From: Entomortierella parvispora E1425
Taxonomy: Eukaryota; Fungi; Mortierellomycota
Direction: 5' to 3'
Assembly: GCA_020891255.1 (NCBI GenBank)
Contig: BQFW01000005.1
Span: forward strand, 1,116,001 to 1,180,000
DNA length: 64,000 bases
Of the stretch, positions 19,901 to 42,049 are shown piece after piece. The notes beneath the pieces were generated by a model, which worked only from the letters and a program-made list of their open reading frames with translations, was not told the origin of the DNA and did not search any database. The translations under genes and the position numbers were made by a program. The stretch's first letter is position 1; every line of letters begins with the position of its first letter.

Positions 19901-21456
19901 CCTAAACAGCGCCACTGCAGTCCTACGACTAATTCAAGTAGTCTGTATCAATCAGATCAGTCTACTTCAAGGGGAAGGAAGCCAATTTCATAAAAGCAAC
20001 TGGCAGCCTTCATGTGACAACAAGCACAGAGGACCAGAGGTTCATTTCTTCTTTAATTACCCAAATCAAACAACGACAAGGGCTCAAGGAAGAAATCTCA
20101 CCAATGACCACGAAAGGTTTTCACAAGATGCTTTCCGACAAAACATCGGAAAAGCAGGGAGCGTCGAACACATGGCGAAGTCTGCAAGACAAGTCAACGA
20201 GCCAAAGGACAAAAGAATCAATTTCATTCTTTGGTTACCCCACATCACACAATGACAGAGGCCAAGGAATAAATCTCTTCAGATGCCAACGAGTGGCTTC
20301 CACAAAAGCTGTTTTGATAAAACATGATGCTAGCGAGAGTGTTGCGCGAGTCTTTCACCACATATGACCAAAAGAGTCGAATGATGACAGATCATAGAGA
20401 ACTGGCTGGATAGTGCAATACCCTTACCTGACAAAAGACAATGCATTAAGAGTGACACGGTGAAAAGTAGCCAGCGATGACGATAGACAACAGCGATGGT
20501 TAATGACGCGGCAAAGAGAGTTCAGGAACGATTGAAGTCGAAAGACACAAGGAAATGAGACTAGGACAGCGAGGGGAGGAGTAAGGATGCAGAAGAGAGA
20601 ATGATGGAGATGTTCGAAGATGAACAGGGATGGAGAGACAAGGACAAAGAGCAGAGAGGAGAGGAGGGCATGACGCCGAAGAAGGGTGTTCTGGTCCGTT
20701 GCTGCGCGAGGGACGGAGAGGAGAGCGCTGCTTTGACAACAGGGACGGAGCGCAGCAAGGGACGGACGGACGACAACAACAAAAAAGGCAAAGGACGTGG
20801 TGTCCATATTCACATTCTTTATTCTTGCCACCCAATCTATATATACCCTGCGCTTGCCTTGCGTTGCTCTTGCGCCGTCCTTCTTGTCTCCATCTTTCCT
20901 GTCTCCATCTTTCTTGGCTCTTGCATCCTCTCCGTCGCACATGTCAATTTCCATTTCTCTTTTCTTGCATCTCTCTGTTGCTCCTTTCCCCTTTTTCAAT
21001 AGACTCCCCTCACCTCCACTTGAGCCCGACGAGGGTTTGAGAAAAGACATGACAAATAAACCCCAAGAACACTGGCCCTTCCATTTGGCAGATTGATTGA
21101 AAGATGCAACTTGAAACTCAAATCCTCACAGATAGGCCGAAGGAGCATCGCAACGGAAGCATCGCAACAGAAGCATCGCGGAGGAGATAAGGCAGAATCA
21201 GGTAGCATGATAGAAGGGCTGGAGTGCGCTCAACATGTCAGGACCTAATAGATTCAGTAGTATTTGAGTTTTTCTGAATCAGCGCCTGGTGTTCACAGTG
21301 AATGCTCGAATTCAATCGTCCATAGCCCGTGAACTTGGTATCAGAACCAAGGACGACTCCAGTAAATCCATCCATCTCCCAGAAAGACAACACTTGCGTC
21401 CTGTTATCAGATTTTCAGTCATACCCTTTTGAGATCCACGAGAGAAAAAGATCACG

Positions 21457-21865
21457 CAGCGTCCATGTGGATTTATTTGGATCCTGCAGAGTGATACGGT
21501 CCGATTCCGTCTTTTTGCCTGATGCCTATGACTCTTTCACCTCCTCCTGCCTCTCGACCGTGGTCCTAATATTGGATCCTTCTGCAGCAGTCATTAATGT
21601 CGTCCTTGCCAGCCACCTCGGCACAGAGCGCAAGCCCCCGGCCACCATTTCTTCATGCCCTGGCTCTCAAAGACATCTAGGATGGCCATCTTTGTCTTCT
21701 GATATGAAGTAGCACATCTCATTCGAACGGTATAAAGCCTAGTCCAGTTATCTACCATCCATTGTGCCTCCTTGACCCTATATCCTGTTCCGTTTCTTCG
21801 TCCAGGCTCAACTCTTCCTGTGGACTCAGTGCCTTGAGCCGAACCAAGCCATACCTGAGGTATAG
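21457..21865 (-). pseudogene. 3' fragment of an F-box/LRR gene plus downstream flank (unit A)
   Basis: Homologous to 43125-43535 (YGLVRLKALS..EELSLDEETEQDI / VKEAQWMVDNW), with a 1-bp deletion relative to the 43281 gene. Confidence 0.85.
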
Positions 21866-22139
21866 GCATTCCGCCATGAAAAAACACGGGCGTGGAAAAA
21901 GGGATGGGAAAGCCCTGCGCGAAAAGACGATGGATATTTCAATTGAGTTTGTTTCTTTGCCAGATCATGGCTACTCCCGCGACACCGCGTCGCTCCTATT
22001 CAGATTTGGGAAAACTTGTGGAATGAACGTTTTTCACCCTTGATCTCAACCCCTGGAGCGGATAAACCATTGCTCAATAAAAAGAAATCCTCTTGATGGA
22101 ACATCTTTCAACCTGGCATATCATATCCCAGCACCCTTC

Positions 22140-22175
<36 letters not shown>

Positions 22176-22223
22176 ACCGTCATTGTCGTTTTTGTTCACT
22201 GAAAGATCCCTAGAGGAACCAAC

Positions 22224-25200
22224 ATGAGGCTCCTCGCACCGCGTCTGACCGCCTATGTGGCCATTGCTGGTATCCTTTGCCTTTCGTCAACCCTCGCTAT
22301 CGATGTTGCGACTGAAAATGATATTGCCATGCCCAATGCGGACGTCAACGCCGCCATCCCCGATGACGATTTTAGCGACTTGAACCATGGAAAAAAACAC
22401 CACAAGCACCACGGCTCAAAGGAAAAGGAGACCAAACTCTGCAGTAAGTTTCCGATGTGAAAAGAGCCTACTCCCCTACATCTCAACGACAACCCCAATC
22501 CTCACCCCGATCCGCCTTTGTTAGCAAACCCCAAAGACTTTACTTTTCTAATGTGCCCTTTTCATCTTGGATGGTTCATCTTTCTTTGTCTAAAGAGAGG
22601 GAATTGAATCTTGTCTGCGACGATAAGGTTATCGACAAACTTATCTGCAAAATCAAAACGGCGCCAGCGGCCATGGCCTATGGCCTTTCTGACGTGGAGG
22701 GATCGCAAACTCCTCTTGAAACCCCCGAAGACGCTACTCTTGAAGCGCTCAACAACGGTGGGGGCAACATTACCAAGGTCTACATCTTTATGGACAAGCC
22801 ATGTTCGAAGGAACTTCCGCCCCTTTGTGCTGCCGCTCTTGAGGCGGCGGCCGAGGAAGCGACCGAGGCAGCGAAGGATGCAGATGAAGCTGATAAGTCC
22901 GAAGAACCGCAGGCCCCTGACGCTCCTGCCGAAGTTGATCCTCAAGGCCTGGCTGACGAAGATGCGGAGGCCGAAGCTGACGTTGATCTGTGGAAGAAGC
23001 ACCATCATAAGCATGGCAAGCATTACCGACACAGACACGGCAACCAGCCCCACAAAGGTCACCATCACCATGGCAAGCATCACAAGGACCACAAACATGA
23101 TCGTCATGGCCACAGCAAGAAGAAGCACCCTTGGGAAGACCTTTGTGTTGCCGTTGGTGCATTTTGTGGTGATAACCTTTACGGATGCGATTTCGATTTC
23201 AAGACACTCTACGCGTGCACGGCCGTTGGCGAAAAGCCCACGATTCTCCTGGCCAATGCAGTGAACTGTGGTGGAACGGACGACGGGGGTAAATGCAACT
23301 GCAAGTCTACGGCCCCTGTTTGCGGCTCTTCTCTTGATCCCTCGTGCAAGGCTGATCCAAATGCCCTCTATCACTGTCCCAATGGTAATGGCACAAAGTA
23401 CGAGATATTCCAGATGTGCAGTCCTGGCACACAATGCACCACAGATAAGGATGGTACCGCCAGTTGTAGTTCCGATACCTGCCACTGCATGGGAACTCAA
23501 CAACGCTGCTCCAGTCATTTCCCTGATAAGTGTGGTCTCCAAAAGAACTCCATCTATCAATGCAGTAGCACTGGACAGCCCGAGTTTGTTTCTTCCTGTG
23601 GCGATGACAAGATTTGTATCACCCATGAGGATGGAGCTATTTGCAGAAGTAAAGACTGCGAGTGTACCGTGGATGGTACCGTGTGCGGCGAAAGATTCCC
23701 CCCAGCGTGCAACATTGTATGTACCGGCCTCTATGACTGCAAGACGGGTCAGGCCCCAGTCTTGATCAAAAACTGCTATCCCAACCATTGCACATCCTCC
23801 GTTGGAAGCACTGAGGCCTCTGCTGTCTTTGAGGCTGCTGATGTCATGGACAGTTGCTCAGATCCTTGCAAATGCACCTCCAAGGGCAAGGTAATGTAAC
23901 TGGATGCGAAGACGTCTTTTTTTTTTTTTATTTTTTTTTGACCATTTGATAAAAGCAACCAACTGACTCAATTTCCTGGTTTCTCTTGATATCGTAACCG
24001 CAGTTCTGCGGCTCTACTTTCCCAATTTCATGTGGTTTCGACACAACAGCTCTCTATAGCTGCGATGGAAGCGGTTCTACGCCAATCAAGGGTGAAGTAT
24101 GCAAAAAAGCATGCCTTGTACATGCTGGGGACAACTCCTGTGCCAGCACATGCCAGTGCCCGATCACCGACAGCGGGAAACCAGTATGCGGTGGAATCCT
24201 CGACCCTTCGTGCAAGTTCGACCCTACAGCCATTTATTTCTGCCCCGGCGGTGCCGGATCCGATCCTCATATCCAAAGGAAATGTCTCCCTGGAACCCAA
24301 TGCAACACTGACAACAGGGGTAATGCCAACTGTGGTTACGGGTCTTGCACCTGCCATGGTGATGTCGTGGCCTGCTCCGGACAATACCCAGCCGACTGCA
24401 ATCTCGCCCCCAACAGTGTCTACAAATGCGGTTTCAACGGCAAGCCTGAGCTTGTCAAGACTTGCGATCCTGCTGAGGATTGTGTGTCTACTGCCGACGG
24501 AGCGTTCTGTGGCCATAAGGACTGCAAGTGTCCCGATGATGGTACTGTCTGTGGTGACATCTTCCCAATCTCGTGTGGAATTGTCGCGCCAGCACTTTAT
24601 ACTTGCAAGAAGGGAGAAGACCCCGTGTTCCAAAAGACTTGTGAGCCTGGAACCTGTTCTTCCACCACTTCAGGCAATTCCTCCAACACGGGAGATACTG
24701 GCAATTCTTCCAACTCAGTCTTTACTTCTGCGGCAATTGACGACCAGTGTATTGATAACTGCAAGTGTGTAACCAAAGGACAGGTATGTTATCCACCACC
24801 TCCATTCAGCTTATTAGTAGATCATTGACCGGGGGCCTGGGTTTTTCTAAACTGCCCTTTGTTTTCAGGTCTGTGGATCTACCTTCTCTCCTAGATGCAA
24901 ACTGGAACCTGAGAGAATATACAAGTGCAGTGGCCCTGGTGCCGAACCCATACCTGATGAGCTATGCAAAGATAAATGCATTGTCCAAGCTGGAGGTTCC
25001 ACTTGCTCAGGCAATCCCGGCAAATGCAAGTGTCCAATCGAATGCAACGGAAAGCCAGCATGCGGCGGAACCCTCGATCCTTCGTGCAAGTTTGATCCTA
25101 CAGCCATTTATTTCTGCCCCGGCGGTGCCGGATCCGATCCCCAGATCCTCAAGAAGTGTCTCCCTGGAACACAATGCAACACTGACAACAGCGGTAATGC

Positions 25201-28200
25201 CAACTGTGGTTACGGGTCTTGCACCTGCCATGGTGATGTCGTGGCCTGCTCCGGACAATATCCAGCCGACTGCAATCTTGCCCCCAACAGTGTCTACAAA
25301 TGCGGTTTCAACGGCAAGCCTGAACTTGTCAAGACGTGCGATCCTGCTGAGGAGTGTGTTTCTACTGCTGATGGAGCTCATTGTACCAATAAGGACTGCA
25401 AATGTCCAGCAGATGGTACTCTCTGTGGTGACATCTTCCCAAATTCGTGCGGAATTGTCGCGCCAGCACTTTATTCTTGCAAGAAGGGAGAAGACCCCGT
25501 GTTCCGAAAGATTTGTGAGCCTGGAACCTGTTCTTCCAACACGGCAGGCAATTCTTCCAACTCCAATCCCTCCAACTCAGTCTTTACTTCTGCAGCAATT
25601 AACGACCAGTGTATTGATGGCTGCAAGTGTGTAGCAAAGGGAGAGGTATGTTACCCACCGCCTTCAGTCAGCTTATCAGTGAATCGCTGATCGGGGGCCT
25701 GGATTTTTCTAAAAACAAACACCCTTTTCTTCTACTGGCCCTTCTTTTTAGGTCTGTGGATCCACCTTCTCTCCCAGCTGCAAACTGGAACCTGAGAAAA
25801 TATACAAGTGCAGTGGCCCTGGCGCCGAACCCACACCTGATGAGCTATGCAAAGGTAAATGCATTGTCCAAGCCGGAGGCGCCATTTGCTCAGGCGATCC
25901 TAGCAACTGCAAGTGCCCGATTACCGACAGCGGAAAGCCAGCATGCGGCAGAACCCTCGATCCTTCATGCAAGTTCGACCCTACAGCAATTTACTACTGC
26001 CCCGGCGGTGCTGGATCCGATCCCCAGATCCTCAAGAAGTGTCTTCCTGGAACCCAATGCAACACTGACAACGACGGAAACGCCGACTGTGGTTACGGGT
26101 CTTGCACCTGCCATGGTGATGTCGTGGCCTGCTCCGGACAATATCCAGCCGACTGCAATCTCGCCCCCAACAGTGTCTACAAATGCGGTTTCAACGGCAA
26201 GCCTGAACTTGTCAAGACTTGCGATCCTGCTGAGGATTGTGTGTCTACTGCCGACAGAGCGTTCTGTGGCAATAAGGACTGCAAGTGTCCCGATGATGGT
26301 ACTGTCTGTGGTGACATCTTCCCAATCTCGTGTGGAATTGTCGCGCCAGCACTTTATACTTGCAAGAAGGGAGAAGACCCCGTGTTCCAAAAGACTTGTG
26401 AGCCTGGAACCTGTTCTTCCACCACTTCAGGCAATTCCTCCAACACGGGAGATACTGGCAATTCTTCCAACTCAGTCTTTACTTCTGCGGCAATTGACGA
26501 CCAGTGTATTGATAACTGCAAGTGTGTAACCAAAGGACAGGTATGTTATCCACCACCTCCATTCAGCTTATTAGTAGATCATTGACCGGGGGCCTGGGTT
26601 TTTCTAAACTGCCCTTTGTTTTCAGGTCTGTGGATCTACCTTCTCTCCTAGATGCAAACTGGAACCTGAGAGAATATACAAGTGCAGTGGCCCTGGTGCC
26701 GAACCCACACCTGATGAGCTATGCAAAGATAAATGCATTGTCCAAGCTGGAGGTGCCACTTGCTCAGGCAATCCCGGCAAATGCAAGTGTCCAATCGAAT
26801 GCAACGGAAAGCCAGCATGCGGCGGAACCCTCGATCCTTCGTGCAAGTTTGATCCTACAGCCATTTATTTCTGCCCCGGCGGTGCCGGATCCGATCCCCA
26901 GATCCTCAAGAAGTGTCTTCCTGGAACCCAATGCAACACTGACAACGACGGAAACGCCGACTGTGGTTACGGGTCTTGCACCTGCCATGGTGATGTCGTG
27001 GCCTGCTCCGGACAATATCCAGCCGACTGCAATCTTGCCCCCAACAGTGTCTACAAATGCGGTTTCAACGGCAAGCCTGAACTTGTCAAGACTTGCGATC
27101 CTGCTGAGGATTGTGTGTCTACTGCCGACGGAGCGTTCTGTGGCAATAAGGACTGCAAGTGTCCCGATGATGGTACTGTCTGTGGTGACATCTTCCCAAT
27201 CTTGTGTGGAATTGTTGGGCCAACACTTTATACTTGCAATAAGGGAGAAGACCCCATCTTCCAAAGGACTTGTGAGCCTGGAACCTGTTCCTACATGGCA
27301 GCCAATTCTTCTGGCGGGGGAGGAGGCGGTTCCTCCAACTCAGTCTCAGTCTTTACTTCCGCAGAAATTGAGGACCAGTGTGTTGATGACTGCAAATGTG
27401 TAACCAAGGGAGAGGTATGTTACCCACCGCCTTCAGTCAGCTTATCAGTGAATCGCTGATCGGGGGCCTGGATTTTTCTAAAAACAAACACCCTTTTCTT
27501 CTACTGGCCCTTCTTTTTAGGTCTGTGGATCCACCTTCTCTCCCAGGTGCAAACATGAACCTGAGAGAATATACAAGTGCAGTGGCCCTGGTGCCGAACC
27601 CACACCTGATGAGCTATGCAAAGATAAATGCATTGTCCAAGCTGGAGGTTCCACTTGCTCAGGCAATCCCGGCAAATGCAAGTGTCCAATCGAATGCAAC
27701 GGAAAGCCAGCATGCGGCGGAACCCTCGATCCTTCGTGCAAGTTTGATCCTACAGCCATTTATTTCTGCCCCGGCGGTGCCGGATCCGATCCCCAGATCC
27801 TCAAGAAGTGTCTTCCTGGAACCCAATGCAACACTGACAACGACGGAAACGCCGACTGTGGTTACGGGTCTTGCACCTGCCATGGTGATGTCGTGGCCTG
27901 CTCCGGACAATATCCAGCCGACTGCAATCTTGCCCCCAACAGTGTCTACAAATGCGGTTTCAACGGCAAGCCTGAACTTGTCAAGACGTGCGATCCTGCT
28001 GAGGAGTGTGTGTCTACTGCCGACGGAGCGTTCTGTGGCCATAAGGACTGCAAGTGTCCAGATGATGGTACTGTCTGTGGTGACATCTTCCCATTTTCGT
28101 GCGGAATTGTTGGGCCAGCACTTTATACTTGCAAGAAGGGAGAAGAACCCATCTTCCAAAAGACTTGTGAGCCTGGAACCTGTTCTTCCAACACGATAGG

Positions 28201-31200
28201 CAATTCTTCCAACACAGGCAATTCTTCCACCTCTTCCCAGTCAGTCTTTACATCTGCAGCACTTGACAACTATTGTACTGATGACTGCAAGTGTGTAACC
28301 AACGGAGAGGTATGGTATCCACCGCCTTGAGTCAGCTTATCAGTAGATCATTGATCGCGGGCATGAGTTTTTCTAAAAAAACACACTCTTCTACTCTCCT
28401 TCTTTTCAGGTCTGTGGATCCACCTTCTCTCCCAGCTGCAAACTGGAACCTGAGAGAATATACAAGTGCAGTGGTCCTGGAACCGAACCTACACCTGATG
28501 ATCTCTGCAAAGGTAAATGCATTGTCCAAGCCGGAGGTGCCATTTGCTCAGGCGATCCTAGCAACTGCAAGTGCCCGATTACCGACAGCGGAAAACCAGC
28601 ATGCGGCAGAACCCTCGATCCTTCATGCAAGTTCAATCCTACAGCCATTTACTTCTGCCCCGGCGGTGCTGGATCCGATCCCCAGATCCTCAAGAAGTGT
28701 CTTCCTGGAACCCAATGCAACACTGACAACGACGGAAACGCCGACTGTGGTTACGGGTCTTGCACCTGCCATGGTGATGTCGTGGCCTGCTCCGGACAAT
28801 ACCCAGCGGACTGCAATCTCGTCCCCAACAGTGTCTACGAATGCGGTTTCAACGGCAAGCCTGAACTTGTCAAGACGTGCGATCCTGCTGAGGATTGTGT
28901 GTCTACTTCCGATGGAGCATTCTGTGGCCATAAGGACTGCAAGTGTCCAGATGATGGTACTGTCTGTGGTGACATCTTCCCATTTTCGTGCGGAATTGTC
29001 GCGCCAGCACTTTATTCTTGCAAGAAGGGAGAAGACCCTGTGTTTGAAAAGACCTGTGAGCCTGGAACCTGTTCTTCCACCACGTCAGGCTCTTCTTCCA
29101 ACGCGGGAGACACTGGCAATTCTTCCAACTCAGTCTTTACTTCTGCAGCACTTAACGACCATTGCATTGATGACTGCAAGTGTGTAACCAAAGGACAGGT
29201 ATGTTATCCACCGTCTTCAGTCAGCTTATTGGTAGATCATTGATCGGGGGCTTGGGTTTTTCTTAAAAAAAACCCCCTATTCTTCTACTGTCCTTTGTCT
29301 TTAGGTCTGTGGATCCACCTTCTCTCCCAGATGCAAACTGGAACCTGAGAGAATATACAAGTGCAGTGGCCCTGGCGCCGAACCCACACCTGATGAGCTA
29401 TGCAAAGGTAAATGCATTGTCCAAGCCGGAGGTGCGACTTGCTCAGGCGACACCAGCAACTGCAAGTGCCCGATTACCGACAGCGGAAAACCAGCATGCG
29501 GTGGGACCCTTGATCCTTTGTGCAAGTTTGATCCTACCGCCATTTACTACTGCCCCGGCGGTGCTGGATCCGATCCCCAGATCCTCAAGAAGTGTCTTCC
29601 TGGAACCCAATGCAACACTGACAACGACGGAAACGCCGACTGTGGTTACGGGTCTTGCACCTGCCATGGTGATGTCGTGGCCTGCTCCGGACAATACCCA
29701 GCCGACTGCTATCTCGTCCCCAACAGTGTCTACGAATGCGGTTTCAACGGCAAGCCTGAACTTGCCAAGACGTGCGATCCTGCTGAGGAGTGTGTTTCTA
29801 CTGCCGACGGAGCGTTCTGTAGCAATAAGGACTGCAAGTGTCCAGATGATGGTACTGTCTGTGGTGACATCTTCCCAATTTCGTGCGGAATTGTCGCGCC
29901 AGCACTTTATACTTGCAAGAAGGGAGAAGACCCCGTGTTTGAAGAGACCTGTGAGCCTGGCACCTGCTCTTTCACCACGGGAGGCACTTCTTCCAACACG
30001 ACAGGCAATTCTTCCAACTCAGTCTTTACATCTGCATCAATTGACGACCAATGTATTGATGACTGCAAGTGTGTAGCAAAAGGAGAGGTATGCTATATAC
30101 TGCGTCTATTCAGCTTATTAGTAGATCATTGATCGGGGGCCTAGGTTTTTCTAAAAAAACGCTCTTCTCTTCTACTGCCCTTCCTTTTTAGGTCTGTGGA
30201 TCCACCTTCTCTCCCAAGTGCAAGTTTGCTCCCGAGACAATCTACCACTGCGACGGTCCTGGATCTGACCCCAAAGCAGGCGAGGCTTGCAAAGGTCCAT
30301 GCATTGTCCAAGCCGGAGGTGCCATTTGCTCAGGCAATCCCAACGATGAATGCAAATGCAAGAAGGTTGGCGACACCTGTGGTTCAGCTTTTGACCCGTG
30401 TTGTGGCGAGGACAAGAACACCCTGTACAGTTGCTCGGCTGTTGATGCTATGCCAGTCTTGAAGCAAGTTTGCAATGGCGTGTGTCTCGTTGAGGGCGGC
30501 GTCGCTGCCTGTCACTGCGTGTGCACGGATGACGGACCAGTGTGTGGATCGGCCTTTGATCCCAGCTGTGGTCTGGCAAACAACACGTTGTATGGCTGCA
30601 ACAATGGAAGCGTGCCTGTTGTTATCAAGAATTGTGACCTTGGTACTTGCTCTGCCAATGTTGCCAGTAATTCTAGTAATAGTAATCCTGGTAATTCTGT
30701 TTCTTTTGGGGACGACGACGGCATTTTCGAGGCCTTTGCGACCTCCGATTTCTGTATTGATCAGTGCTCGTGCACGCAGGCGAACGCCTTGGTAAGTGAT
30801 CGCAAAGTTTTCTCCCTCCAGAGAGAATGCCTCGCTCCTGTAATTTTGAAATTCTTTGGCCAACTTTTGCTCAACTGTTCCTCTGTTCATTCATCTATCC
30901 TTAGGTCTGCTCGGATACATTCCCAGCCGTCTGCCACTACAAGAAAGGAACTCTTATGAGCTGCACCGCCCTCAACGCTATCCCAACCATCGCACAGAAC
31001 TGCACCGACGGCTGCCTTGTGGAGCCTGGAAATGACATGTGCAAACCTAATCTCTGTGTTTGTCAAAAGGCTGGCGATTCCTGCAGTAGCAACTTCCCCG
31101 CCAACTGTCCTTTCGAACCCAACACCCTATACAATTGTTCTAGCGTGGGTGCTCTTCCCGTCAAGAACGTGACCTGCACGAGAACTGAGATCTGCACTGT

Positions 31201-33307
31201 CGTATTTGGTGGTAACGATTTCTGCGGAGAGGACTCGACTTGCACATGTGTTGGTAACGGCACTGTCTGTGGCAGCGCCTTCCCACCCAACTGTAACAAG
31301 ACTGCTACTTCTGTCTACACTTGCCCTGCTGGAACTGAAACCCCTTGCCCGGCAGGATGCGCTGATGGAGTGTGCCCACTACCTGGATGTATGTGTAGCG
31401 GGGAAGGAAATTTCTGTGGCTCTACGTTTTCACCTTTCTGCAACCTTCTGCCCAATGGGGTCTATGAGTGTACCACTGGTGCGCCTCCTGTCTTGCATGG
31501 CAATTGCGGTGAAGGGCCTTGTATTGATTCATATTGCCAAGACGTGTGCTCGTGCAAGGGCACCAACCAAGTACGGACTTTGATGCACGGATGTTAAGAC
31601 GTTTGATTCTGAGATTAACCGAGAACGGATTTTTTTTCTATGACCATTTAGGCCTGTGGTTCCACGTTCCCACCAAACTGCGGTTTGTCGGCTACTTCGT
31701 TGTACACCTGTGTCCAAGTAGGCTCCCCACCCATGCCCCTGCCACCCATGGTCCCAACGAACTGCACCGCTGGCTGTGAGCTCTCTATCCCCGACAACCA
31801 ATGTGTTGATCCTCCCGACCCTCCCTGCAATCAACAAGAGGCCACGAATGCTCTTACCGCTCTCCAGGCGGTTATTACGTCATTGACAAGCACCATGGCC
31901 GCGACCACGGCAGACAATGTATCTGTTGTGGACCTGCCAGTGTTGTTGCAGTTCTTCTCAATCCTCGAATCCAACTTGACCAGTACAGCTCCCGGTATTG
32001 GCGCGCTCACTCAACTTGCTGGCTCGGCGTTGAACTCTGTCAATTCCGTATTTTTGCTTCTGGCTGGTGCACTGAATGAAACTCTGTTCCAGAATGCCAC
32101 CATCTATCTGTTGGCCCCAGTGATCCCGACTCTACAAACCGGGCTGCTGAGCGCGCTGCAAGCGCTCGTCAGTTGCTCAGGAAGCACCACCAAAGATTGT
32201 ACTGCATTGGACCAACTCTTCAACGCCTTTACCGCTGCTGCCCTGACATACGTCTCTCAATTCACCACCCCTGTGGCCGATCAAAGGGCGAGCAATACAA
32301 CTGCAGGAACTGCAACGTTTAGCGCCCAGCTTACCACCGCGGCGGCTGACATCACAGCCTCCATTGCCACTGTCAACCAGACAGCGCTTGATGCCTCTGG
32401 GTTACTCCTCAACCGGATCATTGGTCTTGCCAGTAACACACAGTACGGATCTGCCTCACAGGTGATGATCTTTGCCTACGATGCTGCTGGTTACGCAGCC
32501 GCATGTGCAGGTAAGATCATGAACAAACCAACAAGCAACAACTTCAGAAAAAATAATGATTGTATCCATTCATTTCTTGCATGTCTCTTTATACTTTAAT
32601 TAACCGTCTTGCCTACTTTTTTGGTTTTTCTTTTAGGTCTCAATGTCACGAATTGGCAAGATGCTTGCAATTCATTTGGACAGCGTACCCAGGGATTCCT
32701 TGCCGGGCTCATCGGTGTGATTCAAAACTTCTTGGGTCAGCTTCCAATCGTGGGTCCTTACATTGTCGATCCTGTCCTGACTCAGCTAAGACAATTGCTT
32801 GTGGATGCGCAGACGGGTATCGCTACAGCGATTGGTGGTATTTTGTCGGCCGTCGAGATGATTCTGTCTATCCTCAACATCGTTGGCGGCAATGACAGCA
32901 CAGACCAAATCCGAAATTTCATCTTGGGCATGGTCGGCATCGCAACCCCCCCTTCCCAGTGCCGTCAGCCAAGTGGATGCGAAGGCGTCATCATGGCCGT
33001 CAAGATGCTTATCAACGCTATCTATGCCATTCTGGACGCAATCCCTATCCCTATGGTAGGACCTGCGGTAGTCGCTATTCTCCAGCCTATTACGAATGCG
33101 TTCTTGTCTGGACTGAACTCGGCCACAGGGGCGGTTATCAGTTTAGCCGCAAATACGTTGATCACGGCTATCGGAACCGTCAGCGATATGGTGAAGAATA
33201 TTCCTTTTATTGGTAGTGCTCTTTCGACGGTTACGGACGCGATGGACGTTCTTGTCAACGGTGCCAAGGCCATCCTTAATTGCTACATCAACAACCCCGC
33301 CCTCTAG
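22224..33307 (+). CDS. Giant secreted cysteine-rich repeat protein, 13 exons, about 3268 aa
   Basis: Manually spliced exons: 22224-22443, 22596-23890, 24004-24783, 24869-25645, 25752-26540, 26626-27414, 27521-28309, 28410-29198, 29305-30087, 30192-30791, 30905-31570, 31652-32510, 32637-33307. All introns are GT-AG, phases are consistent, and the total is 9807 nt. Signal peptide MRLLAPRLTAYVAIAGILCLSSTLA, His-rich segment, roughly 40 modules of type CxC...CG..F/Y/L...C.....Y.C....P....C...C, and an amphipathic helical C-terminus. Confidence 0.87.
24004..30191 (+). repeat. Seven tandem exon+intron units of about 860-895 bp
   Basis: Each unit begins ag|GTCTGTGGATC(C/T)ACCTTCTCTCC (unit 1 begins ag|TTCTGCGGC) and ends TGCAA(G/A)TGTGTA...(C/G)AG|gtatg. 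Exons are 777-789 bp, all multiples of 3. Confidence 0.95.
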
Positions 33308-34033
33308 TTTTTTTGTTTCTTTCTTTCTGAAAGTTACGGCATTGTACAATCAACATCGGGAACGACGACGGGCTTGTAAATAGTAGAGCCAAAAGGCAGC
33401 ACTGAGTAGTATTGTGCCCTTGAAGGGGAAGGGAGTTTTTTTTTGGCAAAAAAATCTTCAGGAACCACTATACCCATTGGCACGAACAAAGTTGTACAAA
33501 GTGAATAAAAAAAGGTCTTTTTGATCCCATTGGCAAGGTCAACACGGTTCTTCATGACAACGTCGTCAGTGGCGTCATGTGGCCCTTCTGTTTGATTCAA
33601 TGCGAGGAAATGGCAGCAACACCTTGTCAAAGGTGGCCCCGCTTCTTTAGCCCCAGCAGATACACTTCGGGCTCTGCCAGGCGGGAAGTGGCCACGACAA
33701 TGGTGGTCTTCGGAATGATTCTTCATGACAATGCCTTCGGAGGCGTCATGTGGCCATCTGTTAGATTCATGCCTACAGTTCGGAGACTCAGACAGCAATC
33801 TCCCCATCCATGGTTCTAATTCCTTTTATGGTGCATGGACAGCAATAGGATCAATTCAAACCGTACGAGGCAACTATATTTCTTCATCATCGTTCATCCG
33901 AGCTTGCCGTATCAGCGCCATCGGGCACGTAACTTGGGTACGAAATAAGGTACCAGGCAAGGAACACGTGTACTTTGCCCTCTTTCGTATGCTTTATACA
34001 TGGGGAGGCTTCTTGCTCTTCGCCCAGTCCATG

Positions 34034-34523: not shown

Positions 34524-35269
34524 TTCAAAAAAATCGGAGGGGGGACATGGCCCTGTGTTCTCTATCCCTGCGCTCTTGCGCCGTCCTTCCTGTCTCCATC
34601 TTTCTTGTCTCCATCTTCTAATTCCTTCATCTCGTACCTGAAGCCAATTGCATTTCAATCATCATTTTTTACAATAAAAAACATAGAATCACAAGTCATT
34701 GCCAGAGAGGAAGAGAATTTCTTGGATCTTGCATCCTCTCCGTCGCCTATGTCAATTCCATTTCTCTTTTCTTCCATCTCTATGTTGCTCTTTTCCCCTT
34801 TTTCAATAGACTCCCTCCTCCCTCACCTCCACTTGAGCCCGACGAGGGTTTGAGAAAAGACATGACAAATAAACCCCAAGAACACTGGCCCTTCCATTTG
34901 GCAGATTGATTGAAAGATGCAACTTGAAACTCAAATCCTCACAGATAGGCCGAAGGAGCATCGCAACGGAAGCATCGCAACAGAAGCATCGCGGAGGAGA
35001 TAAGGCAGAATCAGGTAGCATGATAGAAGGGCTGGAGTGCGCTCAACATGTCAGGACCTAATAGATTCAGTAGTATTTGAGTTTTTCTGAATCAGCGCCT
35101 GGTGTTCACAGTGAATGCTCGAATTCAATCGTCCATAGCCCGTGAACTTGGTATCAGAACCAAGGACGACTCCAGTAAATCCATCCATCTCCCAGAAAGA
35201 CAACACTTGCGTCCTGTTATCAGATTTTCAGTCATACCCTTTTGAGATCCACGAGAGAAAAAGATCACG

Positions 35270-35678
35270 CAGCGTCCATGTGGATTTATTTGGATCCTGC
35301 AGAGTGATACGGTCCGATTCCGTCTTTTTGCCTGATGCCTATGACTCTTTCACCTCCTCCTGCCTCTCGACCGTGGTCCTAATATTGGATCCTTCTGCAG
35401 CAGTCATTAATGTCGTCCTTGCCAGCCACCTCGGCACAGAGCGCAAGCCCCCGGCCACCATTTCTTCATGCCCTGGCTCTCAAAGACATCTAGGATGGCC
35501 ATCTTTGTCTTCTGATATGAAGTAGCACATCTCATTCGAACGGTATAAAGCCTAGGCCAGTTATCCACCATCCATTGTGCCTCCTTGACCCTATATCCTG
35601 TTCCGTTTCTTCGTCCAGGCTCAACTCTTCCAGTCGACTCAGTGTCTTGAGCCGATCCAAGCCATACGTTAGGTATAG
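35270..35678 (-). pseudogene. 3' fragment of an F-box/LRR gene (unit B)
   Basis: Counterpart of 21457-21865, homologous to 43125-43535. Confidence 0.85.
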
Positions 35679-35956
35679 GCATTCAGCCATGGAAAAACTG
35701 GGGCGTGGAAAAAGGGATGGGAAAGCCCTGCGCGAAAAGACGATGGATATTTCAATTGAGTTTGTTTCTTTGCCAGATCATGGCTACTCCCACGACACCG
35801 CGTCGCTCCTATTCAGATTTGGGAAAACTTGTGGAATGAACGTTTTTCACCCTTGATCTCAACCCCTGGAGCGGATAAACCATTGCTCAATAAAAAGAAA
35901 TCCTCTTGATGGAACATCTTTCAACCTGGCATATCATATCCCAGCACCCTTCCCTC

Positions 35957-35987
<31 letters not shown>

Positions 35988-36035
35988 ACCGTCATTGTCG
36001 TTTTTGTTCACTGAAAGATCCCTAGAGGAACCAAC

Positions 36036-39000
36036 ATGAGGCTCCTCGCACCGCGTCTGACCGCCTATGTGGCCATTGCTGGTATCCTTTGCCTTTCGTC
36101 AACCCTCGCTATCGATGTTGCGACTGAAAATGATATTGCCATGCCCAATGCGGACGTCAACGCCGCCATCCCCGATGACGATTTTAGCGACTTGAACCAT
36201 GGAAAAAAACACCACAAGCACCACGGCTCAAAGGAAAAGGAGACCAAACTCTGCAGTAAGTTTCCGATGTGAAAAGAGCCTACTCCCCTACATCTCAACG
36301 ACAACCCCAATCCTCACCCCGATCCGCCTTTGTTAGCAAACCCCAAAGACTTTACTTTTCTAATGTGCCCTTTTCATCTTGGATGGTTCATCTTTCTTTG
36401 TCTAAAGAGAGGGAATTGAATCTTGTCTGCGACGATAAGGTTATCGACAAACTTATCTGCAAAATCAAAACGGCGCCAGCGGCCATGGCCTATGGCCTTT
36501 CTGACGTGGAGGGATCGCAAACTCCTCTTGAAACCCCCCGAAGACGCTACTCTTGAAGCGCTCAACAACGGTGGGGGCAACATTACCAAGGTCTACATCT
36601 TTATGGACAAGCCATGTTCGAAGGAACTTCCGCCCCTTTGTGCTGCCGCTCTTGAGGCGGCGGCCGAGGAAGCGACCGAGGCAGCGAAGGATGCAGATGA
36701 AGCTGATAAGTCCGAAGAACCGCAGGCCCCTGACGCTCCTGCCGAAGTTGATCCTCAAGGCCTGGCTGACGAAGATGCGGAGGCCGAAGCTGACGTTGAT
36801 CTGTGGAAGAAGCACCATCATAAGCATGGCAAGCATTACCGACACAGACACGGCAACCAGCCCCACAAAGGTCACCATCACCATGGCAAGCATCACAAGG
36901 ACCACAAACATGATCGTCATGGCCACAGCAAGAAGAAGCACCCTTGGGAAGACCTTTGTGTTGCCGTTGGTGCATTTTGTGGTGATAACCTTTACGGATG
37001 CGATTTCGATTTCAAGACACTCTACGCGTGCACGGCCGTTGGCGAAAAGCCCACGATTCTCCTGGCCAATGCAGTGAACTGTGGTGGAACGGACGACGGG
37101 GGTAAATGCAACTGCAAGTCTACGGCCCCTGTTTGCGGCTCTTCTCTTGATCCCTCGTGCAAGGCTGATCCAAATGCCATCTATCACTGTACCAATGGTA
37201 ATGGCACAAAGTACGAGATATTCCAGATGTGCAGTCCTGGCACACAATGCACCACAGATAAGGATGGTACCGCCAGTTGTGGCTCTGACACCTGCCACTG
37301 CATGGGAACTCAACAACGCTGCTCCAGTCATTTCCCTGATAAGTGTGGTCTCCAAAAGAACTCCATCTATCAATGCAGCAGCACTGGACAGCCCGAGTTT
37401 GTTTCTTCCTGTGGCGATGACAAGATTTGTATCACTCATGAGGATGGAGCTATTTGCAGAAGTAAAGACTGCGAGTGTACCGTGGATGGTACCGTGTGCG
37501 GCGAAAGATTCCCCCCAGCGTGCAACATTGTATGTACCGGCCTCTATGACTGCAAGACGGGTCAGGCCCCAGTCTTGATCAAAAACTGCTATCCCAACCA
37601 TTGCACATCCTCCGTTGGAAGCACTGAGGCCTCTGCTGTCTTTGAGGCTGCTGATGTCATGGACAGTTGCTCAGATCCTTGCAAATGCACCTCCAAGGGC
37701 AAGGTAATGTAACTGGATGCGAAGACGTCTTTTTTTTTTTTTTGACCATTTGATAAAAGCAACCAACTGACTCAATTTCCTGGTTTCTCTTGATATCGTA
37801 ACCGCAGTTCTGCGGCTCTACTTTCCCAATTTCGTGTGGTTTCGACACAACAGCTCTCTATAGCTGCGATGGAAGCGATTCTACACCAATCAAGGGTGAA
37901 GTATGCAAAAAATCATGCCTTGTACATGCTGGGGACAACTCCTGTGCCAGCACATGCCAGTGCCCGATCACCGACAGCGGGAAACCAGTATGCGGTGGAA
38001 CCCTCGACCCTTCGTGCAAGTTCGATCCTACAGCCATTTATTTCTGCCCCGGCGGTGCTGGATCCGATCCTCATATCCAAAGGAAATGTCTCCCTGGAAC
38101 CCAATGCAACACTGACAACAGGGGTAATGCCAACTGTGGTTACGGGTCTTGCACCTGCCATGGTGATGTCGTGGCCTGCTCCGGACAATATCCAGCCGAC
38201 TGCTATCTCGCCCCCAACAGTGTCTACAAATGCGGTTTCAACGGCAAGCCTGAACTTGTCAAGACGTGCGATCCTGCTGAGGAGTGTGTTTCTACTGCTG
38301 ATGGAGCTCATTGTACCAATAAGGACTGCAAGTGTCCAGCAGATGGTACTCTCTGTGGTGACATCTTCCCAAATTCGTGCGGAATTGTCGCGCCAGCACT
38401 TTATTCTTGCAAGAAGGGAGAAGACCCCGTGTTTGAAGAGACCTGTGAGCCTGGCACCTGCTCTTTCACCACGGGAGGCACTTCTTCCAACACGACAGGC
38501 AATTCTTCCAACTCAGTCTTTACATCTGCATCAATTAACGACCAATGTATTGATGACTGCAAGTGTGTAGCAAAAGGAGAGGTATGTTATATACTGCGTC
38601 TATTCAGCTTATTAGTAGATCACTGATCGGGGGCCTGGCTTTTTCTAAAAAAAAAAAGCACTTTTCTTCTACTGTCCTTTCTTTTTAGGTCTGTGGATCC
38701 ACCTTCTCTCCCAAGTGCAGGCTTGCTCCCGAGACAATCTACCACTGCGACGGTGCTGGATCTGACCCCAAAGCAGGCGAGGCTTGCAAAGGTCCATGCA
38801 TTGTCCAAGCCGGAGGTGCCATTTGCTCAGGCAATCCCAACGATGAATGCAAATGCAAGAAGGTTGGCGACACCTGTGGTTCAGCTTTTGACCCGTGTTG
38901 TGGCGAGGACAAGAACACCCTGTACAGTTGCTCGGCTGTTGATGCTATGCCAGTCTTGAAGCAAGTTTGCAATGGCGTGTGTCTCGTTGAGGGCGGCGTC

Positions 39001-41773
39001 GCTGCCTGTCACTGCGTGTGCACGGATGACGGACCAGTGTGTGGATCGGCCTTTGATCCCAGCTGTGGTCTGGCAAACAACACGTTGTATGGCTGCACCA
39101 ATTGAAGCGTGCCTGTTGTTATCAAGAATTGTGATCCTGGCACTTGCTCTGCCAATGTTGCCAGTAATTCTAGTAATAGTAATCCTGGTAATTCTGTTTC
39201 TTTTGGGGACGACGACGGCATCTTCGAGGCCTTCGCGACCTCCGATTTCTGTATTGATCAGTGCTCGTGCACGCAGGTGAACGCCTTGGTAAGTGATCGC
39301 AAGGTTTTCTCCCTCCAGAGTGAATGCCTCGCTCCTGTAATTTTGAAATTCTTTGGCCAACTTTTGCTCAACTGTTCCTCTGTTCATTCATCTATCCTTA
39401 GGTCTGCTCGGATACATTCCCAGCCGTCTGCCACTACAAGAAAGGAACTCTTATGAGCTGCACCGCCCTCAACGCTATCCCAACCATCGCACAGAACTGC
39501 ACCGACGGCTGCCTTGTGGAGCCTGGAAATGACATGTGCAAACCTATTCAGTGTGTTTGTCAAAAGGCTGGCGATTCCTGCAGTAGCAGCTTCCCCGCCA
39601 ACTGCGGTTACGACCATAACACCCTATACAAATGTTCTGGCGCGGGTGCCCTTCCCGTCAAGAAGGCGACCTGCACGAGCACTGAGATCTGCACTGTCGT
39701 TGGTGGTGGTAACGATTTCTGCGGAGAGTCGACTTGCTCATGTGTTGGTAGCGGCGCTGTCTGTGGCAGCGCATTCCCACCCAACTGTAACAAGACTGCT
39801 ACTTCTGTCTACACTTGCCCTGCTGGAACTGAAACCCCTTGCCCGGCAGGATGCGCCGATGGAATGTGCCCACTACTTGGATGTATGTGTAGCGGGGAAG
39901 GAAACTTCTGTGGCTCTACGTTTTCACCTTTCTGCAACCTTCTGCCCAATGCGCTCTACGGGTGTACCACTGGAGCGCCTCCTGTCTTGCAATTTGATTG
40001 TGGTGTAGACTCTTGTGCTGGTTCACAGTGTCAAGACCCGTGCTTGTGCAAGGGCGCCAACAACGTACGTACTTTGATGCACGGACGTTAAGACGTTTGA
40101 TTCTGAGATTAACCGAGAACGGATTTTTTTTCTATGACCATTTAGGCCTGTGGTTCCACGTTCCCACCAATTTGCGGGTTTTCGGCTACTACGTTGTACT
40201 CTTGTTTCGCGGTAAACAACCCACCCTATATATTCACCGACCTACCGAACTGCACCGCTGGCTGTGAGCTCTCTAGCCCCGACAACCAGTGTGTTAATCC
40301 CTGCACACAAGAGGCCGCGAATGCTCTTACCGATCTCCAGGCGGTTATTACGTCATTGACAAGCACCATTGCCGCGACCACGGAAGACAATGTATCTGTT
40401 GTGGACTTGCCAGTGTTGTTGCAGTTCTTCACAACCCTCGAATCGAACTTGACGAGTACAGCTCCCGGTATTGGCACGCTCACTCAACTTGCTGGCTCGG
40501 CGTTGAACTCTGTCAATTCCGTATTTTTGCTTCTGGCTGGTGCACTGAATGAAACTCTGTTCCAGAATGCCACCATCAATCTTTTGGCACCAGTGAACTC
40601 GACTCTACAAACCGGGCTGCTGAGCGCGCTGCAAGCGCTCGTCACTTGCACAGGAAGCACCACCAAAGATTGTACTGCATTGAACCAACTCTTCAACGCC
40701 TTTACCGATGCTGCCCTGACGTACGTCTCTCAATTCACCACCCCTGTGGCCGATCAAAGGGCGAGCAATACAACTGCAGGAACTGCAACGTTTAGCGCCC
40801 AGCTTACCACCGCAGCGGCTGACATCACAGCCTCCATTGCCACTGTCAACCAGACAGCACTTGATGCCTCTGGGTTACTCCTCAACCTGATCATTGGTCT
40901 TGCCAGTAATACACAGTACGGATCCGCCTCACAGGTGATGATCTTTGTCTACGACGCTGCTGGTTACGCAGCCGCATGTGCAGGTAAGATCATTAACAAA
41001 CCAACAAGCAACAACTTCAGAAAAAATAATGATTGTATCCATTCATTTCTTGCATGTCTCTTTATACTTTAATTAACCGTCTTGCCTACTTTTTGGTTTT
41101 TCTTTTAGGTCTCAATGTCACGAATTGGCAAGATGCTTGCAATTCATTTGGACAGCGTACCCAGGGATTCCTTGCCGGGCTCATCGGTGTGATTCAAAAC
41201 TTCTTGGGCCAGATTCCAATCGTGGGTCCTTATATTGTCGATCCTGTCCTGACTCAGCTAAGAAATTTGCTCGCGGATGCGCAGACAGGTGTCGCTGACG
41301 CGATTGGTGGTATTTTGTCGGCCGTACAGATGATTCTGTCTATCCTCAACATCGTTGGCAGCAATGACAGCACAGAACAAATCCAAAATTTCATCTTGGG
41401 CACGGTCGACATCGCAACCCCTCCTTCCCAGTGCCCTCAGCCAAGTGGATGCGGAGGCGTCATCATGGCCTTCAACATGCTTCTTACTGCTGTCTATGCC
41501 CTTCTGGACGCAAACCCTATGACCACAATTGTAGTCGGTCTTGTCCAGCCTCTCGCGAATGAGTTCTTGTCTGCACTGAACTCGGCCACAGGGTCGGTTA
41601 TCATTTCAGCCGCAACTATGTTTATCTCAGATATGGTAGAACTCAACGACGATTTGGTGATGAACTTTCCTTCTATTGATGGAGCTCTTTCGACGGTTAC
41701 GAGCGCGCTGGACGTTCTTGCCAACGGTGCCCAGGCGATCATTAATTGCTACATCAACAACCCCGCCCTCTAG
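36036..41773 (+). pseudogene. Shorter, damaged paralog of the Cys-rich gene (one repeat exon instead of seven)
   Basis: Same exon structure. C6 at 36534-36539 (C5 in unit A) shifts exon 2. In-frame TGA at 39103-39105 (GGA in unit A). Single repeat exon at 37808-38581. Confidence 0.8.
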
Positions 41774-42049
41774 TTTTTTTGTTTCTTTCTTTCTAAAAGT
41801 TGCGGCATTGTACAATCAACATCGGGAACGATGACGGGGCTTGTAAATAGTAGAGCCAAAAAGCAGCATTGGGAAGGGGGGTTTTTTCAACAAAAAAATC
41901 TTCAAGAACCACTATACCCATTGGCACGAACAAAGTTGTACAAAGCGAATAAAAAAAAGTCTTTTCGATCCCCATTGGCAAGGTCAACACACTTTACGAA
42001 CTCTCGATTTTTTTTTTTTTAAAATAACATTTCGACGTTCAATTTTTTC

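Follow-up and report, generated by a model that had tools for sequence, protein, structure and literature searches.

A predicted giant secreted protein of 40 eight-cysteine modules encoded by a cassette-exon array in the fungus Entomortierella parvispora

Several described groups of proteins each resemble, in part, the predicted product of gene A, a 13-exon gene in a 64,000-nucleotide stretch of the Entomortierella parvispora E1425 genome (contig BQFW01000005.1, positions 1,116,001 to 1,180,000, forward strand; hereafter the window, numbered from its first letter). The FLO/ALS-type adhesins of yeasts carry intragenic, Ser/Thr-rich, intron-free tandem repeats and are anchored by glycosylphosphatidylinositol (GPI). 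They are secreted to the wall and change in length when their tandem repeats recombine, as is predicted for the gene A product, whereas the repeat of gene A is a folded four-module unit with its own intron, and no GPI signal is present. The CBM14/peritrophin-A domains of tachycitin, Avr4, Der p 23 and chitotriosidase are, like the gene A module, small (50–65 aa), beta-rich, disulfide-locked and secreted, often in long tandem arrays as in insect peritrophins, although the module has eight cysteines in another spacing instead of six. EGF-like, TNFR-type and follistatin modules and the Cys-rich region of the Entamoeba Gal/GalNAc lectin share with it a CxC motif and the build of small disulfide-rich modules. 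The C-terminal tail of the protein is predicted to consist of up-down four-helix bundles of about 120 aa, similar in shape to those of plant PMEI/invertase inhibitors, the talin rod and apolipophorin-III. The ecology described for Mortierellomycotina centres on chitin: they are reported to live as chitinolytic saprotrophs, and chitin-binding modules are enriched in their secretomes (PMC9391592). Our tentatively favoured reading, which we regard as close to probable while falling somewhat short of it, is that the gene A protein may be a multivalent extracellular glycan-binding scaffold.

For the E. parvispora E1425 genome, Nanopore reads served for assembly, Illumina reads for polishing and AUGUSTUS for annotation (PMC8759367); the assembly comprises 38.9 Mb in 20 contigs. 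Between 22.2 and 33.3 kb of the window, stop-free stretches on the forward strand switch frame at short gaps. All of these gaps begin with a GT donor, in most cases GTATGT or GTAAGT, and end with a YAG acceptor preceded by a branch region of the CTGAC/TGATC type. When these gaps are taken as introns, GT-AG throughout, each exon is open in its own phase and the exon lengths add up to a coding sequence of 9,807 nt, corresponding to 3,268 codons and a stop codon. The intact 13-exon frame of about 3268 aa given in a preliminary description of this DNA is thus confirmed. Searches and fold predictions were made with single-exon translations or with database relatives. The features of gene A are as follows.

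22224..33307, forward strand: gene A, 13 exons, with GT-AG introns and each exon open in its own phase
22224-22443, 22596-23890, 24004-24783 and 24869-25645, forward strand: exons 1-4
25752-26540, 26626-27414, 27521-28309, 28410-29198 and 29305-30087, forward strand: exons 5-9
30192-30791, 30905-31570, 31652-32510 and 32637-33307, forward strand: exons 10-13
22224..22298, forward strand: predicted signal peptide, about aa 1-25, MRLLAPR / hydrophobic core / TLA, with a putative cleavage site (hydrophobicity and reading of the sequence)
22823..22993, forward strand: acidic Ala/Asp/Glu-rich stretch of 57 aa in exon 2, 35% Asp plus Glu
22994..23128, forward strand: His-rich stretch of 45 aa in exon 2, 42% His, with Lys/Arg
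23144..31807, forward strand: array of 40 eight-Cys modules in exons 2-12 (family profile)
24004..30191, forward strand: seven tandem cassette units, each an exon of 777-789 nt and an intron of 85-106 nt, phase 0
30192..31570, forward strand: exons 10 and 11, with diverged modules (3 and 4), outside the young array
31832..33304, forward strand: low-charge helical domain in the rest of exon 12 and in exon 13 (intron 32511-32636, phase 1)

Gene A is judged from these data to be a real and intact gene, because it has 13 open exons with canonical splice sites, 32–33 cysteines are retained per cassette, and the ratio of nonsynonymous to synonymous change (omega) is purifying. Its product is predicted to be secreted on the basis of the signal peptide, a total of 336 cysteines and, in the tail, sequons for N-glycosylation and loops with conserved Cys pairs. 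At the N-terminus, a charged n-region is followed by 15 hydrophobic core residues (Kyte-Doolittle 1.99 at aa 8-30) and by TLA before the likely cleavage site, as expected from the signal peptide proposed earlier. A hidden Markov model (HMM) of 59 positions, for which 1,267 fungal family modules were used, recognizes exactly 40 modules in gene A at 22–57 bits each, where about 40 small disulfide-rich modules had been estimated. Four of them are in exon 2, four in each of exons 3–9, and three, four and one in exons 10, 11 and 12, respectively. The module core of about 59 aa follows the pattern CxC-x5-6-CGxxFPxxC-x6-7-LYxC-x3-Gx2P-x5-C-x3-5-C-x7-9-C, and the consensus with its eight cysteines is CKCKGDGDVCGSTFPASCGLDPNTLYTCGAGGKPPVVKKCKPGGGCVVKAGGAACKSED. 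The His-rich head recurs in the consensus of the module family.

The seven cassette exons (exons 3–9) are 780, 777, 789, 789, 789, 789 and 783 nt long, and all enter and leave in phase 0. They had been described as seven near-identical phase-0 exons; their number, length, four-module content and common intron position hold, although the identity among whole cassettes is 80–94% at the nucleotide level, which is not near-identity. The cassette intron lies after module position 8 (CxCxxxGx / xCGSTF). Since a module runs from CxC to the sixth following Cys in the structure alignments, the cassette introns interrupt a module eight codons from its start instead of marking a border between domains. 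Every cassette has an open frame, and 32–33 cysteines are retained in each. Differences among cassettes are mostly synonymous, with omega of 0.20–0.67 and a median of 0.36 over 77 pairs, paralogues included, and the modules are under purifying selection. Exons 4, 6 and 7 (e.g. 25025-25219) encode a 33rd, unpaired Cys in PIECNG, where the other cassettes read PITDSG; judging from the sequence, this residue could form an intermolecular disulfide.

No match to any Pfam family at E≤1 was found in eight gene A exon translations or in 20 proteins of the family, nor was any found on ten weak-tail matches, and comparison of the module alignment with PDB sequence profiles gave nothing meaningful. The preliminary description, in which the module was not recognized as a named domain, is borne out in this respect. 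An AlphaFold model of exon 6, with a predicted local distance difference test score (pLDDT) of 73, contains four beta-rich modules per exon. The top Foldseek rows for this model are an Entamoeba lectin, follistatin, TNFR and EGF, and none of the rows from these groups is significant (E 0.06–0.7, template modelling (TM) score 0.09–0.15). Membership of the EGF-like, laminin-EGF or TNFR families was rejected, with neither a Pfam match nor the six-Cys EGF pattern and with E 0.25–0.6 and TM of about 0.1 for Notch EGF and 4-1BB in Foldseek. In an all-against-all structure alignment, only 13 PDB chains among 48,161 reached Z≥2, and eight of the 13 are chitin binders of the CBM14/peritrophin-A type or include domains of that type: Der p 23, Der f 23, two Avr4 structures, the chitotriosidase CBM14, Blo t 12, tachycitin and EHEP. 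Each of these eight chains aligns to one whole module, over 31–57 residues and at Z of only 2.2–4.2, and the remaining five are Fsx1 (Z 4.7), PAFC, SIX4, SIX1 and EPC3. The enrichment of CBM14 among the matches to the modelled module is striking as a weak lead, though the scores are low.

With a profile of exon size, a search of 1.84 billion representatives for members of the module family gave 177 proteins at E≤1e-3. Thirty relatives were looked up, of which 25 are 'hypothetical proteins' of Mortierellaceae, four are metagenome or run-assembly sequences and one is bacterial. The genera represented are Lunasporangiospora, Podila, Gryganskiella, Linnemannia, Mortierella, Actinomortierella and Entomortierella, and many of the relatives are 1,500–3,300 aa long. 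As judged from these searches, the family is almost confined to Mortierellaceae, with the addition of one candidate-phylum WS6 bacterium. In that bacterium (candidate division WS6 bacterium GW2011_GWF2_39_15), an 'Ig family protein' (KKR06129.1, P0160; cluster mate P0141) encoded at LBWK01000001.1:168216-174228 has seven tandem six-Cys repeats. An HMM of fungal modules only matches every one of these repeats at positions 3–57 with about 20 bits, giving totals of 106 and 95 bits versus ≤5 bits for 200 shuffles, and hhalign of the WS6 repeat with the fungal module gives 96.6% probability (E 5.7e-10, 50 columns). The two share CG...LYxC..G..P.....C...C........C, although the WS6 repeat is without two of the eight cysteines of the fungal module. 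Thus, by sequence comparison, the WS6 repeats and the fungal modules are homologous. The WS6 repeats are followed by an M23-like peptidase segment, in which the motifs HxxxD and HxH are present, and behind this segment, in the longer protein, by Big_9 and He_PIG domains; these neighbours distinguish the WS6 repeat from the fungal module. Kin of the module are lacking in Pfam and among PDB sequences, but with the WS6 homologue and the weak CBM14-like fold signal it is not entirely isolated. Within E. parvispora itself, a paralogue on contig 9 ends in a Ricin_B lectin domain (E 1e-12; L011:4880-5221), which replaces the helical tail.

A glycan-binding function is suggested by four lines taken together: the CBM14 fold lead, the WS6 homologue beside a probable wall hydrolase, the paralogue ending in a ricin lectin and the chitin-centred ecology. 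A lectin-like role, which had been proposed from the sequence, is plausible in the light of the first three. As predicted, the gene A protein has a signal peptide, acidic and His-rich stretches, a rod of 40 disulfide-locked modules and a low-charge tail of four-helix bundles. The modules would be glycan-binding units with a CBM14/tachycitin-like fold, and their ligand would most likely be chitin, chitosan or another wall polymer that contains N-acetylglucosamine. With 40 modules in a row, binding to cell walls could be of high avidity and tunable by length, and the target walls may belong to the fungus itself, to other fungi, to arthropods or to bacteria. The tail, presumably outside the cell, may serve for self-association or for attachment to hydrophobic surfaces or lipids.

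Several results weigh against the glycan-binding reading. Foldseek comparison of the exon 6 model with the PDB gave nothing better than E 0.057, and all fold matches of the module are below Z 5. A six-frame scan of the genome with PF01607 matched none of several hundred modules and found a single true CBM14 unrelated to the family, at the following position.

C14:944854-945009, reverse strand: single true CBM_14 (PF01607) match of the genome, 24.6 bits, unrelated to the module family

Alignment of the module profile with this true CBM14 by hhalign gave a probability of 0.6%, and the number of cysteines in the module (eight) and their spacing are unlike the six of CBM14. Membership of CBM14 by sequence is rejected. 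The M23 match of the WS6 protein is below the Pfam cut-off (15.6–16.8 versus 28.7 bits), and no second bacterial relative was found in GTDB species genomes beyond the WS6 genome itself. The fold matches of the tail, which reach Z 12.8, are within the noise of helical bundles, and the role given to the tail is a guess. A wider proposal would regard the eight-Cys module as an unnamed carbohydrate-binding family common to Mortierellaceae and the candidate-phylum bacterium, and the giant arrays with exchangeable tips (helical bundles or ricin lectin) as a length-tunable, fast-evolving surface recognition apparatus that holds chitin-containing or bacterial partners, endohyphal bacteria included; taken as a whole, we consider this unlikely.

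The tail, the last 490 aa or so of the protein, is rich in Ala, Leu, Thr, Ser and Ile, contains only 6–8% charged residues, and includes loops with Cys pairs as well as nine sequons for N-glycosylation. In the AlphaFold model of the relative P0146 (47–49% identical), this region is all-helical and forms a series of four-helix bundles from about 20 long helices (pLDDT 74 for the model as a whole, near 90 for the first half of the tail and 50–60 for the second), in support of the helical C-terminal domain recognized earlier. Bundles 2 and 4 (P0146 residues 313-452 and 529-642, which correspond to the end of exon 12 and to exon 13 of gene A) are homologous repeats, aligned by hhalign at 95% with E 5e-8; the hhalign value for bundles 3 and 4 is 74%. 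The domain stands at the C-terminus of at least 16 family proteins in phmmer searches with the exon 12 and exon 13 translations, and is absent from some other members, such as P0016 and the contig-9 paralogue. A search with the tail alone matched only Podila and Gryganskiella. With the tail alignment, PDB sequence profiles gave nothing below E 0.15; with exons 12 and 13, no Pfam family matched at E≤1, HsbA (PF12296) and PMEI (PF04043) included; with the tail model, Foldseek found no PDB match at E≤0.001; and with exon 13 and the P0146 tail, the ESM Atlas returned no usable match. PMEI, the talin rod and apolipophorin-III align with the tail at Z 9.8–12.8, and PMEI has disulfides as predicted for the tail, but these scores are within bundle noise, sequence and Pfam matches are lacking, and the tail was found in Mortierellaceae only.

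On these features one might base a hyphal-surface fibril or adhesin without sugar specificity, in which the modules are a stiff spacer and the hydrophobic bundles anchor in or on the membrane or wall, or coat hydrophobic surfaces. It would be an analogue of apolipophorin-like or HsbA-like proteins in fungi that lack classical hydrophobins. The low charge of the tail, three exon 13 segments with Kyte-Doolittle ≥1.6, the homology between bundles, the conservation of the tail in the family and the nature of its best fold matches (four-helix bundles including apolipophorin-III, the talin rod and membrane four-helix bundles) are all in line with this explanation. However, the Cys pairs in successive loops and the sequons spread along the tail argue that it is extracellular and not membrane-spanning, the C-terminus is not of the GPI type, and neither HsbA nor any other Pfam family is matched. 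In addition, the purifying selection on non-Cys residues of the modules suggests more than a spacer, and one paralogue has a ricin lectin in place of the tail. A fibril or adhesin of this kind is rather unlikely in our estimate. The protein ends in ...AILNCYINNPAL without a hydrophobic tail, and a GPI-anchored wall adhesin was rejected because a hydrophobic C-terminal signal is absent and the repeats are Cys modules, not Ser/Thr-rich. Anchoring in the membrane by the C-terminal helices was judged less likely because of the conserved Cys pairs and the sequons in successive loops. These disulfide-stapled loops and sequons indicate that the whole tail is most likely extracellular, and from its modelled structure the tail may act in self-association or in binding to hydrophobic material, as in the glycan-binding scaffold.

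The C-terminal part of the protein may be fast-evolving. Compared with gene C, a close paralogue described below, exons 11–13 (window 30905-33304) have omega of about 0.98 (157 nonsynonymous and 53 synonymous differences) with 44 of 46 cysteines kept, whereas exons 2–3 have omega of 0.48 (76 nonsynonymous and 42 synonymous), a contrast that is marginal (Fisher p=0.057). Such a pattern would be expected if gene A encoded an antagonism or defence protein whose modules target the surface of a competitor or grazer and whose helical bundles insert into its membrane like alpha-helical pore formers, the fast C-terminal third reflecting an arms race. The tail helices are hydrophobic, and the weak fold matches of the module include the antifungal protein PAFC and the Fusarium SIX effectors. 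Nevertheless, the omega contrast is only marginal, there is no outstanding match to a family of pore formers (for SmhB, Foldseek gives rank 48 and E 0.65), Pfam finds no toxin domain, and a rod of 3,268 aa is an odd delivery vehicle, which together make this role quite improbable.

The length of the module array changes at the DNA level. Repeat detection places the seven cassette units 874–895 bp apart, and a super-period of 1,769–1,784 bp is visible in the array. Some 300-nt blocks are 95–99% identical (e.g. 24842-25158 and 26599-26915), with mosaic blocks of 99% identity among units that are otherwise 84–90% identical. This mosaic pattern in the sequence indicates gene conversion or recent two-unit duplications. 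The gene itself lies in a tandem segmental duplication, the second copy of which holds a paralogue with a single cassette.

21007..33545, forward strand: segmental duplication copy 1, gene A with 1.2 kb upstream (blastn)
34820..41990, forward strand: segmental duplication copy 2, holding gene B (blastn)
36036..41773, forward strand: gene B, one-cassette paralogue, 2.7 kb downstream of gene A
36534..36539, forward strand: gene B lesion 1 in exon 2, a run of six C where gene A has five, causing a +1 frameshift
39103..39105, forward strand: gene B lesion 2 in the exon-10 equivalent, TGA where gene A has GGA

The two copies are 97.4% identical in the 5' part and 92% in the 3' part by blastn, and 97% in the promoter region. 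The 5' part of the single gene B cassette (37808-38581) matches exon 3 of gene A and the 3' part matches exon 9, with the junction inside the exon, and by this comparison the cassette is a chimera of the two. Gene B is probably a pseudogene as judged from its two lesions, although the first may be no more than a homopolymer error left in the Nanopore assembly. Omega values for exon 10 that involve gene B were discarded as unreliable, since its stop codon disturbed the mapping of codons. The GenBank protein GJJ71489.1 (EMPS_03839, 1,212 aa), which maps to the window at 99–100% identity, is the GenBank model of gene B; it avoids the damaged parts of the gene and lacks the beginning of exon 2, the whole cassette and also exon 10.

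A third close paralogue, gene C (C5:1777400-1786500), is located 630 kb away on the same contig and has five cassettes. No stops were found in the gene C exons examined, and its tail is 85–87% identical to that of gene A. Further paralogues are present on contigs 14, 13, 9, 4, 2 and 11, and the family has at least nine loci in the genome. The contig-14 paralogue (C14:793000-802900) is 62% identical and has four cassettes of about 740 nt, and the contig-9 paralogue (C9:63000-80900) is about 43% identical, with introns after 8, 10–11 or 17 modules. The exons of both again begin with xC[GAT]STF and end with CxCxxxGx, at the same phase-0 intron position; the position is therefore old and travels with the unit. 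Gene A shares with the other paralogues the eight-Cys module, the His-rich head, the giant size and the intron position, and differs from them in its young, still-recombining array of seven cassettes and its tandem one-cassette duplicate; the contig-9 paralogue differs further in having a ricin lectin instead of the helical tail and 8–17 modules per exon in place of the four per cassette of gene A. From paralogues with seven, five, four and one cassettes and from the chimeric gene B cassette, it is shown at the level of sequence comparison that the array grows or shrinks by in-register unequal recombination or gene conversion between units of about 880 bp. The length variability at the DNA level anticipated in the preliminary description is accordingly found among the paralogues.

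From the symmetric phase of the cassettes it had been concluded there that any of them can be gained, lost or skipped in frame, with diversification possibly also at the splice level. Diversification at the splice level is not supported, and the symmetry does not point to a design for skipping: it arises automatically when a unit with one intron duplicates in tandem, and in-register unequal recombination keeps the frame whatever the phase, so that it is no evidence for regulated skipping. In fungi, intron retention is the dominant form of alternative splicing, and skipped exons are rare. Combinatorial skipping of the seven phase-0 cassettes, yielding many length isoforms from one gene, is very improbable. 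In its favour, any subset of exons 3–9 is removable in frame, and the GenBank model of gene B omits its cassette and exon 10 yet stays in frame, but that model is a gene-finder product around two lesions. Against it, all cassette introns have strong and near-identical splice signals (GTATGT ... YAG), and an in-frame stop occurs about 14 codons into each intron.

Mortierellaceae are among the commonest soil and root-associated fungi, and this giant secreted family has been annotated in them only as 'hypothetical'. Neither the module nor the tail domain is named in Pfam, and both are unstudied and nearly lineage-restricted. If the module does bind wall glycans, it would constitute a new carbohydrate-binding family and would suggest how chitinolytic fungi, some of which host bacteria, grip substrates or partners. 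No new genetic mechanism and no new 'system' is shown here: the kind of object is familiar, a secreted Cys-rich repeat protein expanded by tandem exon duplication, and gene A is one member of a multigene family, in contrast to the undescribed system that had been suspected. The locus is nevertheless a clean example of the expansion of a folded-domain array in which a four-module exon travels with its intron. It contributes a young cassette array, a paralogue series of seven, five and one copies and an explicit test of the bacterial link, and these young paralogues with their visible mosaic conversion tracts make the process easy to follow across isolates.

Two minor observations concern the DNA of the locus. 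Seven open reading frames of 255–300 codons in the +1 frame (24765-30076, forward strand) run through the cassette introns. They were rejected as genes (e.g. 24765-25634) and are regarded as compositional decoys, having one stop per cassette versus 3.0 expected after codon shuffling; the same stop-poor bias of the +1 frame is also seen in distant paralogues. Upstream of gene A, a run of 27 T (22144-22170) lies about 55 bp before the start codon, and a matching site precedes gene B.

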